Sequence record: OM456492.1
DNA: 64,000 bases
Strand: one strand, 5' to 3'
Each line of letters opens with the position of its first letter. Position 1 is the first letter of the stretch. This document shows, in pieces, positions 21,721 to 41,012 of the stretch. The position numbers were made by a program, and so were the translations under genes. The notes below the pieces were generated by a model. It was not told where the DNA came from. It made no database searches and saw nothing but the letters and a program-made list of their open reading frames with translations.

Positions 21721-23124
21721 CTGTTTGTCCACTCCAATCCTTTTGGAGCAGGTGTGTAGTAACACCCTCCCTAACTTTCATTAGGGCACAGACCATACCT
21801 TAGCCATGAGCTTTCGCTTTTAGGCTCCTCCCCACTTCGGCGCTATTCTAAGCACCTACGAGCATTTCAGCTCCGGTCGTTGAACGTTCCTCTTACGAGG
21901 CTTCGCTGCTGATTACCCATTGTTAAAACCCTTAGCAGTATTGTTTAGCATAGGTCATCTCATTACTTGTTTCCGACTTTCGTCTCCACTTGGGCAAATG
22001 AGCTTTAGGGGTTCCCAGCAATTCAGGGAGATACACATCAGAGGTTTCCCGTCTGATGGGGCAAGGCTATTCTGCTGTTAAATATTGAACTTCAAATTGT
22101 TTGTACTTTCCGGTTTGTGAGACTGCTTTGGCCACAGTGTTTCTTTTCACACCAATCGCGTTTGAAAACTCTTGCAAAGAATTCCAAATGGTTTTGATGT
22201 TAGTGGTCGTATCAGTCACACGCACCATCGACGGTACACGTTTTGGCATTTGTGATTGTGGTCTGGGTTTGCGGAGATCGATCATGTCAGTTATGGCAAC
22301 ATCGATACCCACCATGTACCACGCCTCATATCCAAACTTAGTCAAATCGACGGAACCGCCGTTGAGATGGGAATAGATGAGGTGTGGTTTTATACCCACG
22401 TATTCGGCTGCTGCCGGTACAGACGAGAACAGGAAATATGGTTCCTTACCAACTTTTCTGATGACCAGTCCTTTATTACCTGGTCCTGAGTTCTTACCAA
22501 TAGAATTCTTGGTGAGAATCCAGTCGTCTTCCGGTACCTTGACTTCAAACACATCATTTAGCGTGTATTGACGATTAAGCCCACGCGCGATCGAGCTTGA
22601 AACCAAGTGCCGATTAACGCCGATATACTCAGCCGCCTTAGTCATGCTACGGAACTGAACTATATCGCCGGTCTCGAGATTTCTGACATCGACAATAATG
22701 TTGTCAGTTCTTAGACCAGTATCGAAAGCATGATTAACATTTTCCTTTCGATAACACCACTCAAGGTTTACCACAGATGGATTACTCTTAACACCATCAC
22801 GATGGTTAACCTCGTCACCACATTTATCCAGGAACACAGTCGCAACAATTCGATGTAAATGGGTTTCGCCTTTACAACCGCGCACTCCCAGGTATCCACT
22901 TTTGAGAATGAAGACTGGTAGCGGCGTGACCATACCTTTTACTTTACAGTCGCCCAACGCATCAACAAAGAGATCACGATAGACTGGGTGTCTGTAATAC
23001 CCCTTAAAAACATACGAGGGCTCTAAATCATCGCGTAGTTTCCTACTCAACTTTTCAATAATCACAATTTATTCCCTATTACCAGTCACCGACTAAGAAT
23101 AAGGAATAGCAGAATAACACTTTT
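21721..23124 (-). mobile_element. Group I self-splicing intron (1404 nt) with HNH homing endonuclease
   Basis: 5' exon ends in U (AACGGT), intron ends in G. Core elements: P AATTGCTGGGAAC (22011-22023), Q AATCAGCAG (~21906-21914), R GTTCAACGACC (21875-21885), S AAGGTATGGTCT (21790-21801), with GACC/GGTC P7 pairing. Confidence 0.9.
22067..23065 (-). CDS. Intron-encoded HNH homing endonuclease with three NUMOD1/IENR1-like HTH repeats
   Basis: HLHRIVATVF..VNHRDGVKSNPSVVNLEW HNH motif; repeats FRSMTKAAEYIGV, FSSVPAAAEYVGI, WNSLQEFSNAIGV; GTG start; AT-richer than flanks. Confidence 0.92.
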   Translation of the reverse strand: MIIEKLSRKLRDDLEPSYVFKGYYRHPVYRDLFVDALGDCKVKGMVTPLPVFILKSGYLGVRGCKGETHLHRIVATVFLDKCGDEVNHRDGVKSNPSVVNLEWCYRKENVNHAFDTGLRTDNIIVDVRNLETGDIVQFRSMTKAAEYIGVNRHLVSSSIARGLNRQYTLNDVFEVKVPEDDWILTKNSIGKNSGPGNKGLVIRKVGKEPYFLFSSVPAAAEYVGIKPHLIYSHLNGGSVDLTKFGYEAWYMVGIDVAITDMIDLRKPRPQSQMPKRVPSMVRVTDTTTNIKTIWNSLQEFSNAIGVKRNTVAKAVSQTGKYKQFEVQYLTAE

Positions 23125-36750: not shown

Positions 36751-37698
36751 CTAATCAAACTGAAAATCGTACACGCTAAGCCATTGCTCACGTGGAAACA
36801 AATTATAAACTTCCTCAGGGATGTGGAGTACCAACCATCTAGCTCCGTTACCGCCAACGTACCAGGAAGCGTACGGATATATAGAATCCTTCGGTGGTGC
36901 TAACGGAGAAGGTAATTGCTGAGCCCCATAAACGATGCTACCGACCATCTCGCCGTCCGGTAGGACTGCCGCAACCATCCAATTCGCGGGATAATAGGTT
37001 CCAGCATCGGGAGTCGCTAAATAACGCAAGTATAAGTTATCTGGCTCAAACCGCTTGCGTAGAGTTAAGAATAAACACAACTCATACGGTTCGATGTTCA
37101 ATCTGGTGTTCGGGAGACTATGCTCTTTATACCAGTTTGCATAACCTGCCTGCAGTGCTCTGATTGCCAGGATTGGTTTGTCTATATCCACAGGTAGCTG
37201 GAGTGGTGTAACGTTCAAATCTGCGGCGGTTGGAAACATTACCGGTTCAGGATTGATGAGCTGGTTATACGCTTCCCGTAAACGATTCATCTTGATGCGT
37301 AATGCACCGTTCGTTAACACCAGCCTACGTCCATGGTTTTCATCTGCCGCACGTTCCGTAAAAAGTGCATCGCCGAAGTGGCGAACAAACTCAATGCTTA
37401 GGAACTTGGTGTGGTACGTAGGTGATGTGTACTCAATGAACTCATTCTGTCTGAATCCAAAATGGTGGAGCAATTCGCCGTTGGTCCATTTGAACACAAA
37501 TCGGAATTCGAAGTTCTTGTACTGTAGCGCATCTTTTACAGCACGTATCGCTTCCCAAGCGTCGAAGTTCGTTCTGTATAACGAACCAAAAGGGAAGAAT
37601 CTGCGAGGTAAGAAAGGTCGAATGCGGGTTGCTTCTGCGAGGCTGAAGCCATCCTGGTTTAATCCTTCGATAGCGCTAGGATTACTTGGTCTGTACAT
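36751..37698 (-). CDS. Hypothetical protein (315 aa)
   Basis: AAGG SD; promoter motif upstream. Confidence 0.7.
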   Translation of the reverse strand: MYRPSNPSAIEGLNQDGFSLAEATRIRPFLPRRFFPFGSLYRTNFDAWEAIRAVKDALQYKNFEFRFVFKWTNGELLHHFGFRQNEFIEYTSPTYHTKFLSIEFVRHFGDALFTERAADENHGRRLVLTNGALRIKMNRLREAYNQLINPEPVMFPTAADLNVTPLQLPVDIDKPILAIRALQAGYANWYKEHSLPNTRLNIEPYELCLFLTLRKRFEPDNLYLRYLATPDAGTYYPANWMVAAVLPDGEMVGSIVYGAQQLPSPLAPPKDSIYPYASWYVGGNGARWLVLHIPEEVYNLFPREQWLSVYDFQFD

Positions 37699-37757: not shown

Positions 37758-37772
37758 AGGTAATATCTATCT
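37758..37772 (-). promoter_or_regulatory. Promoter motif AGATAGATATTACCT
   Basis: Motif variant, with TTGCATTC further upstream as at 59227. Confidence 0.6.
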
Positions 37773-37788
37773 GTGGATATTTGGAATG

Positions 37789-37831
37789 CAAAAAAAATAA
37801 AAGAGTTGTCCTCACTCCGAAGAGTGAGGAC
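37789..37831 (-). terminator. Intrinsic terminator
   Basis: GTCCTCACTC-TTCG-GAGTGAGGAC plus T tracts. Confidence 0.8.
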
Positions 37832-37921
37832 TTCCCTGGTGTTGGCATGTAAATCTACAAGGTCTTACAAGGTCAGACGAGGGCTAATCGTCAGGAACAT
37901 AGCTACTGGGCGTTAGCTAAT

Positions 37922-38743
37922 TCAGCGAAGGGCGTCGGTAGTCTTACCGTGGGAGTTAACCACGTAGACTTCGTCGCCTTTATAAAACAGTTCGTACAAC
38001 GCACCGGTACTGATCTGGTTATCAGGATCGTATCCAGATTCTTCTTCGATGCACATTGCGCCAATCAATTCATCGACTGACCGGTCGCCAGGGCGAGCGC
38101 CTTTTAAAACAGTAACAACGCATTCACCATTAACCCATTGAGACTGCTCCTGGACATCGGTGAACTCCATTACTGGTCCCGATTCCAATTCAACTTGCTG
38201 CAGCTCTTCCTGGGTGTAGATAATAATCTTCATATCGCTGTCAGGCGACGGTTTGTACCAACCTAATTTCTCTGGTGGTGTACCGTAACCAACGATTTCA
38301 CCACAAATATTATCCACAGCATCGGGTATACGTGAACCCGTGTCCAGTATCAGAACAGCATTACCTTTATCATCCAGCACATAGCTGATAAAGTCACGCA
38401 CATTGCAGTTAAACAGCACAATGTCGTCCAAGTCGGGAATAACAAGATTAGGGAAAAGCTGTTTCAGATACAGATGACCCGATTTTTGATCTTCTTGCAT
38501 TCGAGTCACCCAACTGTAATAATCGGACGGGTGCTTTGTAATCGGATCAGGTACGTCGGCGGCGACGCGTTTTAATCCTGGATTAACTGCTAAAAAATCA
38601 TCATCGACAACGATGTCGAAGCGCTCGTTCTCGAGCATTTTTAATGCCTCGCGGAATACACGAGACTTACGGTCACCGATACGAACCTTTTCATGTTCGG
38701 TAATGATGCGGTCACCATCAATCACACGTTTAACTGTAAACAT
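37922..38743 (-). CDS. Hypothetical protein (273 aa; MFTVK...GDEVYVVNSHGKT type)
   Basis: AAGGA SD before ATG 38743. Confidence 0.7.
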   Translation of the reverse strand: MFTVKRVIDGDRIITEHEKVRIGDRKSRVFREALKMLENERFDIVVDDDFLAVNPGLKRVAADVPDPITKHPSDYYSWVTRMQEDQKSGHLYLKQLFPNLVIPDLDDIVLFNCNVRDFISYVLDDKGNAVLILDTGSRIPDAVDNICGEIVGYGTPPEKLGWYKPSPDSDMKIIIYTQEELQQVELESGPVMEFTDVQEQSQWVNGECVVTVLKGARPGDRSVDELIGAMCIEEESGYDPDNQISTGALYELFYKGDEVYVVNSHGKTTDALR

Positions 38744-38809
38744 GTTGCTTTCCTTCTTACTTCTACTATTGCTGCTTCTATTGGTAGTCCACGACATATC
38801 CCTCGTGGG

Positions 38810-39117
38810 TGGGTTCGGTGTGTAACCGAATAAGTTTTCTGCTCCCAGGGCAACGCACCAGGCTTAATTGATTTAGTTGGCTAACTAGGAACAGAAAAGG
38901 GTGAACAAACCAGGGCGCGAGGTGGCTCAGTATCGATGCGTAAGAAAAACCCAAACGGCCCTGGTCTGTAATTTGGCCCGAAGTCACCGTGTCGGAGGAC
39001 AGCCCATGCAGGTAGGCGGCAATGGACACGGTGACCGCGGAAGTGGTTCGTGTTACCCTTGACCCGTGTGTGGATACGCGTCTTATTTCGAATGCCTTCG
39101 GGATAAGGATAACACAA
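38810..39117 (-). ncRNA. Candidate structured ncRNA (~300 nt) 3' of tRNA(CAU)
   Basis: Four long helices, including a 14-bp helix (38835-38848/38885-38898) that pairs fully only on the minus strand (2 G-U); no credible ORF. Confidence 0.55.
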
Positions 39118-39118
39118 A

Positions 39119-39199
39119 TGGGGCGAGCAAACGGACGGATTCGAACCGTCGAAATATCCGATTATGAGTCGGGTGTTAATTCCTCTAACTTCGCTGCTC
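39119..39199 (-). tRNA. Atypical tRNA with CAU anticodon (Met elongator or Ile2)
   Basis: D stem GTTA/TAAC, anticodon loop CT-CAT-AA, T arm GACGG-TTCGAAT-CCGTC; extended bulged acceptor stem; 3' GCCCCA. Confidence 0.7.
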
Positions 39200-39200
39200 T

Positions 39201-39269
39201 TGCTTTGACCGGTCTCGAACCGGCGACCTTCCTCAAAGAGGTTGCTCTACCTACCTGAGCTACAAAGCC
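39201..39269 (-). pseudogene. tRNA-like element with a collapsed anticodon loop
   Basis: GGCTTTG-TA-GCTC-AGGTAGGTA-GAGC, arm CCTC-TTT-GAGG, variable region AGGTC, T arm GCCGG-TTCGAGA-CCGGT, CAAAGC; no encoded CCA. Confidence 0.7.
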
Positions 39270-39647
39270 ATTGTAAGGTGCCGGTGCATCCCGGCGTGTG
39301 TTAGTGCAGTCAGCTCCCTCGGGCCTATCTGCGGCAACACGTTGCCCGGCGCACCGACATATACCACAGTAACCTCGTAAAGTCACTCTGGTATTGTTCG
39401 TTGCATATTACTAAGTTATCACGTAAACGATTTCACCACTTCCAATAATTAACCTAAATTCATTTCTGAATGCAGGTGATGGACTTCTTCTTCTGAGCCT
39501 GGCCATAAGGTCAGGTCTTAGCGTCTCCAAGCACCACCCGCTATCACGTACATTCGTGGCGTACCGGCCGTATGAGGTACCGCGCCTACGGTGACACACA
39601 GTCACCCTAACACTGGGAACTCAATCCCATTCGGTTATCAGATTGTG

Positions 39648-39769
39648 GATTTACAGGCGTAGCATGGCGGCTTAATGGGCCGGTGCTTGCCTGTCCCCTA
39701 GGGACGGTTGTCGTGGAGACGCCAGTCTGTAAGTGGGGCCCTTACGGGAAAACCCATCGCCTGTAAACC
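39648..39769 (-). ncRNA. Candidate multi-way-junction RNA (~122 nt)
   Basis: 12-bp closing helix (39648-39659/39758-39769) enclosing five hairpins. Confidence 0.5.
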
Positions 39770-40044
39770 AAACATGACTGAATACCCAGAACCGGACGTT
39801 TGAAATCAACATCCTGATGTACTGGAGTATTTCATGCATAAACGTGTCTCGTATCGAATGAGGTTATGACCGGTCAGATACCCAGCATCCTGTACAAGCG
39901 ACCTGGTGCTTTGTGTACCTGGCTGCTACGGATTTATCGGTTTACCGTAGGTCTGAGCTGCTACCGGCTCATGCGGGACATCAACCCGCACAATCTGAGT
40001 AAGTATCATGGCTCGAATAGGGTTAGTGGGCCGAAGCCCACTGT

Positions 40045-40299
40045 TTAGCCAGCATTGAACGATTCATGAACGACGGTCCCAGCAGGATAGTGCGTAGTGC
40101 CGATAAGAGTAACGGTCAGGGTAAGCCCTTCATCCCAGCGCTCTTTCGGTAACCAGCGGCAGTCCATCCAATGACCACAGTCGGGAGGAATTGCACACGC
40201 AGCTTGCTCCGTAGGAGCCGCCACGATTATGGAATCAAATTCATCATACCCGATATCGTCAGTTCGTTCTAGCAAGTACAAATTCATGTTGTTCTCCAA
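40045..40299 (-). CDS. Small phage protein (MNLYLL..GYDEFDSIIVAA..SFNAG type)
   Basis: GGAG SD; pattern I recall from phage hypothetical proteins. Confidence 0.75.
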   Translation of the reverse strand: MENNMNLYLLERTDDIGYDEFDSIIVAAPTEQAACAIPPDCGHWMDCRWLPKERWDEGLTLTVTLIGTTHYPAGTVVHESFNAG

Positions 40300-40351: not shown

Positions 40352-40427
40352 TGGCGGGGGCACGAGGTTTCGAACCTCGAACCTTCGGTTTTGGAGACCG
40401 GTGCGCTACCAATTGCGCCATACCCCC
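40352..40427 (-). tRNA. trnW: tRNA-Trp(CCA)
   Basis: 76-nt cloverleaf: GGGGGTA/TGCCCCC, anticodon loop CT-CCA-AA, T arm CGAGG-TTCGAAA-CCTCG, encoded CCA. Confidence 0.95.
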
Positions 40428-40520: not shown

Positions 40521-41012
40521 TCACCTCCGTAGTTCGTAAGTGCTAATCTCACCACCGGTGTAGATATCGCATTCGGACGCAATCTCAACAGCACGAACCG
40601 CATTCGCGCCCATCTTCATCGCACCCAACGCATACTCGTAACCGCTTCCGGTTGCCAGAGGTGGTGTGGCTTCACTCCACCACAACGACACGTCGTCTTC
40701 ACGCTTCCCACCGACTATCGCTTTCCCTGAGGCCAGAAGCATCAGGAAAGTAAAATCCATCTTCGCAGGTAACTGCGAGCTTTGTGTTAACCCCTTGTAG
40801 CCGGGTCTCAAGCGGATAGTTTCCAGCAGGGCCAATTGTCCTGTGATGTCGCCGCTTACCCCGAACACCACAATTCGTTCACCGGTAATCCACCACTCCT
40901 CGTCAGGAGGACAGACGAATAACTTCTGGGTATTCAGGTTGCAGATATTCGACCCACGGGTTAACTGGCCGTCAGCAGCTAAGACTTTTCCATCGAACGC
41001 TATCGTGGTCAT
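40521..41012 (-). CDS. Ntn-hydrolase, HslV/proteasome-beta-like threonine peptidase
   Basis: N-terminal MTTIA..LAAD, conserved K, ATGSG..ALGAM, D..TGG; GGAG SD. Confidence 0.8.
   Translation of the reverse strand: MTTIAFDGKVLAADGQLTRGSNICNLNTQKLFVCPPDEEWWITGERIVVFGVSGDITGQLALLETIRLRPGYKGLTQSSQLPAKMDFTFLMLLASGKAIVGGKREDDVSLWWSEATPPLATGSGYEYALGAMKMGANAVRAVEIASECDIYTGGEISTYELRR

Follow-up and report, generated by a model that had tools for sequence, protein, structure and literature searches.

A modular family of hairpin RNAs that probably forms the trailer of a tRNA operon in SPN3US-like jumbo phages

The stretch of DNA analyzed here (64,000 nucleotides of sequence record OM456492.1, in the following called the window) carries an array of hairpins behind its tRNA-like genes. 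This array (P1-P4b) represents a new modular hairpin family and probably constitutes the structured trailer of the tRNA operon, which would be transcribed from the minus strand together with the tRNAs. The local genes are located on the minus strand, and all RNA features are read from higher to lower window coordinates (5' to 3'). Salmonella phage SaP7 matches the region with 100% identity, and SPN3US as well as about 30 other Seoulvirus genomes match it at 96-97%. By its sequence, the window is that of an SPN3US-like jumbo phage (Seoulvirus). Seoulvirus phages of the SPN3US type are jumbo phages of 240 kb, which are related to phiKZ.

A sequence-only reading of this DNA had proposed a structured RNA of about 300 nt at 38810-39117. 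When we folded the corresponding minus strand (326 nt, 39125-38800), we obtained a minimum free energy of -122.8 kcal/mol compared with -90.5 ± 5.6 kcal/mol for dinucleotide shuffles (z = -5.75), and none of the 100 shuffled sequences matched this value. For the plus-strand fold of the interval, a z-value of -1.53 was calculated. The first module, P1 (39047-39118, minus strand), is a long hairpin with a basal stem of 13-14 bp, which appeared in the minimum free energy fold and in a covariance model; it corresponds to the branched stem that the sequence-only reading had placed at 39050-39115. Its conserved apical region reads UCCYGRAGRCAUUC ... CAUYCAU ... GGUC, and in the SaP7-type phage GAACCA is found on the 3' side. 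P2 (38977-39041, minus strand) consists of a basal stem of 4+12 bp, an internal loop, a short apical stem and an invariant CCUGCA hexaloop. The 11 perfect pairs that had been predicted between GUCACCGUGUC and GACACGGUGAC (39035-39025 / 38993-38983) are part of this module. P3 (38905-38969, minus strand) is a 14-bp stem around a conserved U-rich segment (GGGUUUUUCUU), and the helix ACCAGGGC / GCCCUGGU was recovered exactly where it had been placed (38965-38958 / 38916-38909). In P4 (38835-38898, minus strand), UUUUCUGUUCCUAG (38898-38885) and CUGGGAGCAGAAAA (38848-38835) form a 14-bp stem with two G-U pairs and a conserved GCCUGGYG apically. On the plus strand these two G-U pairs would read as A-C mismatches, as had been pointed out before. 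P4b (38814-38830, minus strand) is a small hairpin (UUCGGU-UACAC-ACCGAA), and beyond the interval proposed originally we found P5 (38789-38808, minus strand), a 6-bp hairpin with a conserved GGGAWAWG loop.

Comparison with related phages showed that the folds of the P1-P4b array are real and under selection. A covariance model of P1 and P2 (R1) aligned 17 phages. Here, 93.6% of the cells were paired, compared with 36-45% when the partners were slid, and 13 pairs had changed on both sides (0-4 in the slid controls). For the main stem of P2, changes on both sides were counted at seven of 12 pairs, but the P2 counts of this alignment are too low and understate the pairing, because the model-guided alignment left P2 of the Huxley group out of register; single-sequence folds do show the helix. 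The P2 architecture was constant in 10 phages on four unrelated stem sequences, with a basal stem of 12-18 bp and an invariant CCUGCA loop. A second covariance model covering P1 alone (R2) recovered 22 P1 copies from four genera, which exhibited compensatory changes at nine of the 13 stem pairs and 92% paired cells (34-56% in the slid controls). The P1 covariation score was reached by no shuffle, with the reservation that the shuffles ignore phylogeny and that there are only some six to eight independent lineages. In Wellingtonvirus, the entire P1 stem is swapped for unrelated sequence and the apical region (GAAUGGCAUUCCGGAAAAAUUUCAUUCA) is retained. P5 showed compensatory changes at five of six pairs, and 97% of its cells were paired (24-51% in the slid controls). 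Chance is an unlikely explanation for the covariation, since the helices agree with each other and the slid controls differ.

For the remaining modules, we inspected close and more distant relatives. Among seven SPN3US-like genomes, seven of the eight variable stem columns keep the pair. P4 has three variable stem columns in these phages and the pair is intact in all three; in P3, the pair at 38911 is broken in one SPN3US-like variant. Two checks suggested by the sequence-only reading, covariation of the helices (P1+P2, P1 alone, P5) and the search for uncompensated helix breaks in close relatives, came out in favor of the proposed structure, apart from the one broken pair in P3. P3 is retained with an altered stem sequence in pEa_SNUABM_29 and in the Wellingtonvirus phages pEa_SNUABM_11 and Kwan, the GCCUGG motif of P4 also occurs in Machinavirus and Erskinevirus, and SPAsTU carries UUCGAC-UUCG-GUCGAA at the P4b position, so that modified versions of P3, P4 and P4b exist in pEa_SNUABM_29, SPAsTU, Wellingtonvirus or Erskinevirus. 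An alternative inner helix of P1 (GACAU with AUgGUC) was considered; one compensatory change in pEa_SNUABM_29, noticed by eye, speaks for it, and it was not counted. The module content varies by genus: P2 is absent in pEa_SNUABM_11, P3 is reduced in Machinavirus and only P1 occurs throughout. The array may therefore not act as one unit, and P1 is, judging from these alignments, the universal module of the hairpin family.

These comparative data also bear on the idea that the hairpins are decayed tRNA relics in an eroding operon or that the stretch codes for small proteins. SPN3US-like phages have indeed lost most of the 8-11 tRNAs that their relatives carry at this locus, and each hairpin is roughly tRNA-sized. 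Moreover, ORFs of 78 and 83 codons overlap the interval and several records annotate a 'hypothetical protein'. However, the tRNA model RF00005 (at least 29 bits) found no match inside 38744-39125, even at E ≤ 10, and the hairpins are also present in phages with a full tRNA set. The compensatory changes indicate selection on pairing, the lineages differ by indels of 1, 5 and 7 nt, which no reading frame would survive, and the overlapping ORFs are without a match to a PHROG family. Both versions of this explanation are very improbable and we consider them largely refuted.

Searching 50,697 phage records with blastn, we found the element only in four genera of Erwinia and Salmonella jumbo phages. 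The blastn matches themselves fell into Seoulvirus (SPN3US-like phages, SPAsTU, pEa_SNUABM_29) and Machinavirus, and synteny with two downstream proteins added Erskinevirus (Asesino, Stratton, phiEaH2) and Wellingtonvirus (Kwan, Wellington, pEa_SNUABM_11). When the second downstream protein was used as query for further related loci, SPN3US alone was returned, and a scan of IMG/VR with the P2 loop motif yielded only SPN3US and Caitlin, i.e., no relatives outside the GenBank phage collection. As the sequence-only reading had advised, we also searched Rfam 15 (including GOLLD, ROOL, T-box and known leaders), and no family matched the minus strand of the interval even at E ≤ 10; the homologous loci of four relatives gave tRNA matches only. 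In the literature on SPN3US and other Chimalliviridae, we found no description of the hairpin array. Since the array is conserved, structured and located beside a tRNA cluster in four genera, which is the placement of the structured RNAs of phage tRNA islands, we file it as a new RNA family of this kind.

At its 5' side, the array is connected to the tRNA operon. The only tRNA that ARAGORN called in the window was tRNA-Trp (40352-40427). Two tRNA-like genes, neither of them called by ARAGORN, precede the array in one operon. The upstream one (39200-39269, minus strand) scored 38.1 bits with the Rfam tRNA model and has an anticodon loop shortened by 4 nt. Its neighbor (39126-39197, minus strand) is the last tRNA-like unit ahead of the hairpins. 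The sequence-only reading had addressed it as tRNA(CAU); the CAU anticodon and the match to the Rfam tRNA model speak for this designation, but the match is weak (30.6 bits at a cut-off of 29), and we refer to it as tRNA-like. In related phages, tRNA-Asn is the last of 8-11 clustered tRNA genes, and the next 235-540 nt contain no credible gene. Upstream of the tRNA-like pair, the window has 780 nt without credible ORF (39270-40050, minus strand, fold z = -4.1), which extend to an 84-aa gene and contain a second copy of ACCUGCAU at 39477; at the matching position the relatives have tRNA genes. Some SPN3US-like phages carry an insertion of about 260 nt at 39268-39274. Two further observations concern the RNA-rich parts of the window. 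Beside tRNA-Trp there is a gene (40521-41012, minus strand) matching the PHROG 'peptidase HslV family' (E = 5e-38), and at 21769-22097 (minus strand) the Rfam group I intron model gave 51.9 bits, barely over the cut-off of 50.

The direct contact of the structure with the tRNA 3' end, as described in the sequence-only reading, holds across the family with one exception. In 19 of the 20 trailing copies, which cover four genera, P1 starts 0-3 nt beyond this end. The 30 nt ahead of P1 belong to a tRNA or tRNA-like gene, of which they comprise T arm, acceptor strand and 3' end. This 3' end is CCA except for the CAU tRNA-like gene of the SPN3US-like phages, and the spacing is independent of whether the last unit is tRNA-Asn, the CAU tRNA-like gene or an unannotated tRNA-like sequence. 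A sequence of the latter type lies between tRNA-Asn and P1 in pEa_SNUABM_29 (locus L001, 1393-1498); it consists of an acceptor stem, a T arm (GGGGUUCGAGUCCCC), ACCA and a long insert and is called neither by ARAGORN nor by Rfam. The exception is Salmonella phage 1252, where a CDS of 540 nt is inserted exactly at the junction (locus L018, 1-394). This CDS may be a mobile gene that uses the tRNA/P1 junction as insertion site. In five whole genomes of 240-250 kb, among which SPN3US represented the window as its nearest record, P1 was confined to the tRNA locus. Machinavirus phages of the Huxley group have a second P1 copy inside the tRNA cluster just upstream of tRNA-Asp, which ends 0-1 nt from the annotated tRNA-Asp start in Huxley and pSal04 and slightly overlaps it in pEa10. 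These second hairpins (L008, 597-672; L009, 415-490; L010, 504-580) each come after a further structured stretch of about 230 nt.

On its 3' side, the array of the SaP7-type phage is not bounded. The sequence-only reading had described a structured RNA of about 300 nt; its strand specificity and its direct contact with the tRNA were borne out, and it is also conserved, but it is not a self-contained molecule in this phage. On the minus strand between 39125 and 38744, we detected no terminator-like or attenuator site (G+C-rich hairpin followed by a U run), so that nothing of this kind separates P1 from the next start codon, and the structure passes 38810 into P5, a tract of ten consecutive A-R-N triplets ((ARN)10, 38753-38782, minus strand) and the ribosome binding site. 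The tract leads into the Shine-Dalgarno sequence AAGGA (38751-38755), which is located 7 nt before the ATG at 38743. Tracts of at least seven A-R-N triplets occur twice in the 64 kb compared with 0.035 expected, and the other one is coding. A tract of 9-15 triplets was present in all 18 relatives that have the downstream gene. Relative to the ATG, these tracts occur in all three frames, and in six phages the frame of the gene is closed by a stop codon at most five codons ahead of the ATG. Thus, the periodicity is a feature of the RNA and not of a coding sequence, and the longer annotated starts (ATG 38797 in the window, Huxley gp20) are probably wrong. The downstream gene (37922-38743, minus strand) encodes 273 amino acids and belongs to phrog_17697 (E = 2e-112); its product matched no Pfam family. 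Homologues of this gene come after the array in Seoulvirus and Machinavirus. In both genera, the array passes into P5, a tract of 9-15 ARN triplets, the Shine-Dalgarno sequence and the gene without an intervening terminator-like site, and a terminator behind the gene ends the unit. P5 is present only in phages having the gene, and we assign P5 and the ARN tract to the downstream gene.

The first terminator-like hairpin on this strand (37808-37831, 10 bp with a T-rich tail) lies past the gene and closes the unit. Together with the promoter-like region behind it, the terminator of SaP7 aligns with the sequence that follows the bare array of the Erskinevirus phage Asesino, which indicates that the transcription unit consists of the tRNAs, the hairpin array, an optional gene and the terminator. 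A promoter for this unit was not located. Between the terminator and the next gene (36751-37698), there is a copy of the motif GATAGATATTAYCT (37758-37771, minus strand), which is conserved in Asesino, Kwan and Huxley. This motif occurs at 15 sites in the window (1.9 expected), 13 of them on the minus strand, and it probably defines a phage promoter class.

The lack of a terminator-like site between the hairpins and the gene could also mean that the array is simply the cis-acting 5' untranslated leader of gene 37922-38743, that all its hairpins stabilize or regulate this single mRNA and that the neighboring tRNA is incidental. P5, the ARN tract and the Shine-Dalgarno sequence form a clear translation-initiation region that travels with the gene, and the element and the gene are joined in RNA-seq contigs. 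However, the hairpins persist where the gene, P5 and the ARN tract are all missing. Erskinevirus keeps P1, the SPAsTU-type hairpin and the P4-type GCCUGGUG hairpin, and Wellingtonvirus keeps P1 and P3. In Asesino, the array (z = -6.9) leads straight to the clear homologous terminator, and the extra P1 copies upstream of tRNA-Asp in the Machinavirus tRNA clusters are far from the gene. Because the array persists without gene, P5 and tract and ends at a terminator in Asesino, P1-P4 are more than the leader of one gene, and we consider the pure leader explanation unlikely.

RNA-seq contigs from four libraries of one study, which involved a phage 97% identical to the window, span 37840-39274 in one piece; the sole gap is a diverged stretch of 281 nt inside the downstream gene. 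These data are assembled contigs (Logan) that report presence and neither ends nor strand nor abundance; they cover nearly all of the 5,901 nt compared, and DNA carry-over is possible. They are consistent with co-transcription of the tRNAs, the array and the gene. In the same RNA libraries, gene 36751-37698 had by far the highest contig depth.

How might such a trailer be generated and what could it do? According to the trailer reading, which we prefer, the RNA would be made as part of the tRNA precursor. An endonuclease that cuts behind the last tRNA to mature its 3' end would then free the trailer with P1 at its extreme 5' end. Release by tRNA processing, as already suggested by the sequence-only reading, appears plausible. 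The cut might be made by RNase E in the A/U-rich spacer (AUUUUG) and the weak U-A/U-G base of P1, or by RNase P, which would accept P1 as hairpin substrate. With its 5' end base-paired, the trailer would be protected from 5'-monophosphate-dependent decay by RNase E, and so would the mRNA fused to it. We also considered P1 as a CCA-tailed minihelix of the RNase P type, for which one would expect a stem of at least about 12 bp with discriminator base and CCA behind it. GAACCA follows P1 in the SPN3US-like phages and in the main copies of Machinavirus, but the tail reads GAACAC in Stratton, AAACAC in pEa_SNUABM_11 and CCU or CCC in the second copies, so that the tail is not conserved across the family, which speaks against this candidate.

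The invariant loops (apical region of P1, CCUGCA of P2, U-rich segment of P3, GCCUGGYG of P4) may serve as sites for a protein or RNA partner. This feature, invariant loops atop freely covarying stems, is also what one would expect if the array were an abundant trans-acting non-coding RNA derived from the tRNA precursor, which works as decoy or sponge for a host RNA-binding protein or a defense factor or as scaffold for a phage protein. Asesino has a gene-less, terminator-bounded unit that would fit such a function, and tRNA-adjacent structured phage RNAs are known from T4 (RNAC/RNAD; PMC3014915) and from the GOLLD and ROOL families (bioRxiv 10.1101/2024.12.08.627333). However, the conserved loops have no standout complementary site in the window, and the module content is inconstant between genera. 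We regard this trans-acting function as rather unlikely. A variant of it, which we put forward with considerable doubt, holds that P1-P4 is cut out as an abundant trans-acting RNA whose loops capture a host or phage factor, and that P1 is a new processing signal for the last tRNA. The captured factor may be a host RNA-binding protein or nuclease, a tRNA-directed defense factor or a phage protein handling tRNA or mRNA. If P1 were such a signal, the last tRNA of the operon could be matured without a downstream tRNA.

Several more specific assignments of the loops were explored. On the transcribed strand of the window, we found no complement of GCCUGGUG, and complements of ACCUGCAU occurred in the window at about chance frequency. 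The P2 loop as mimic of a tRNA anticodon loop was rejected, as the loop has 6 or 8 nt and C in the place of U33 (by eye). In Huxley, UGCCUGGCGG is identical over 10 nt to what we take to be the 5'-end sequence of 5S rRNA, but this identity is seen in one lineage and the others differ, and we took it as chance. The U-rich P3 segment is a possible anti-Shine-Dalgarno sequence; by its complementarity it fits the SPN3US-like and Caitlin-like phages but not the AGGAG Shine-Dalgarno sequence of the Huxley group.

For phages carrying the downstream gene, the trailer reading adds a second element. The GGA of the P5 loop, the ARN tract and the Shine-Dalgarno sequence would set the translation of this gene, most likely via Hfq bound to the ARN triplets and possibly together with CsrA. 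Motif resemblance suggests both proteins as putative binders of the leader. In the case of CsrA, GGA is invariant in the P5 loop and also present in the Shine-Dalgarno sequence. However, the base before GGGA varies (A, G, U) and the A(N)GGA context of CsrA sites is thus not conserved, so that the resemblance to a CsrA site appears only loose.

The public records describe this RNA as 'hypothetical protein' or leave it blank. Database CDS annotations run over it in the window (38744-38797) and in the homologous loci L008 (1779-2000), L027 (3095-3499) and L017 (268-504); among them are the extended start of the SaP7 gene, Huxley gp20 with 74 additional codons, gp20 and gp21 of Asesino and, on the other strand, SPFM4_00252. 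Both the covariation and the in-frame stops of sister phages speak for erroneous annotation, and start codons and ORFs of several deposited genomes are corrected by our analysis.

Nucleus-forming jumbo phages are used as models and as therapeutic agents, and to our knowledge almost nothing is known about their non-coding RNAs. The array adds a new and well-supported RNA family, whose position in the tRNA operons of these phages is fixed and conserved. It bears on the maturation of the last tRNA of a phage operon, on the protection of an mRNA that starts at a processing site and on the use of host Hfq and CsrA by lytic phages, for which 10-15 ARN triplets at a ribosome binding site are an unusually clean candidate Hfq site.

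Among the systems known so far, RNAC and RNAD of phage T4 arise by processing of tRNA precursors. These species 1 and 2 RNAs are small structured RNAs from the tRNA region of the phage (PMC3014915) and they are visible on Northern blots (PMC9697503). The hairpin array is likewise a structured RNA in a phage tRNA region, but it has no sequence similarity to them that is detectable by blastn. It is longer, consists of independent hairpins in a row and continues into an mRNA in two genera. GOLLD and ROOL are structured RNAs of phages and prophages that are often located beside tRNA islands (bioRxiv 10.1101/2024.12.08.627333). In contrast to these pseudoknotted and multimeric RNAs of 580-800 nt, the array comprises about 330 nt of mostly simple tandem hairpins with modules varying by genus, and it matched neither of their Rfam models at E ≤ 10. 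Stabilizer hairpins at 5' ends and hairpin-type substrates of RNase P are represented by the ompA leader, the 4.5S RNA precursor and the M3 RNA of phi80. Here, the likeness consists in the long stem at the predicted 5' end and in P1 followed by GAACCA, which resembles a stem with discriminator base and CCA, but the CCA-like tail is not family-wide, and the large conserved apical region of P1 would be superfluous in a mere stabilizer. Finally, repeated A-R-N triplets are sites of Hfq cross-linking, which often coincide with Shine-Dalgarno sequences (PMC4104026), and Hfq represses translation on such motifs (PMC8266614). The phage tracts share the sequence features of a site for the distal face of Hfq, with 9-15 consecutive triplets that are non-coding and lead into the Shine-Dalgarno sequence; compared with the usual Hfq sites, the candidate tract is two to four times longer and would be part of the mRNA of a lytic jumbo phage.
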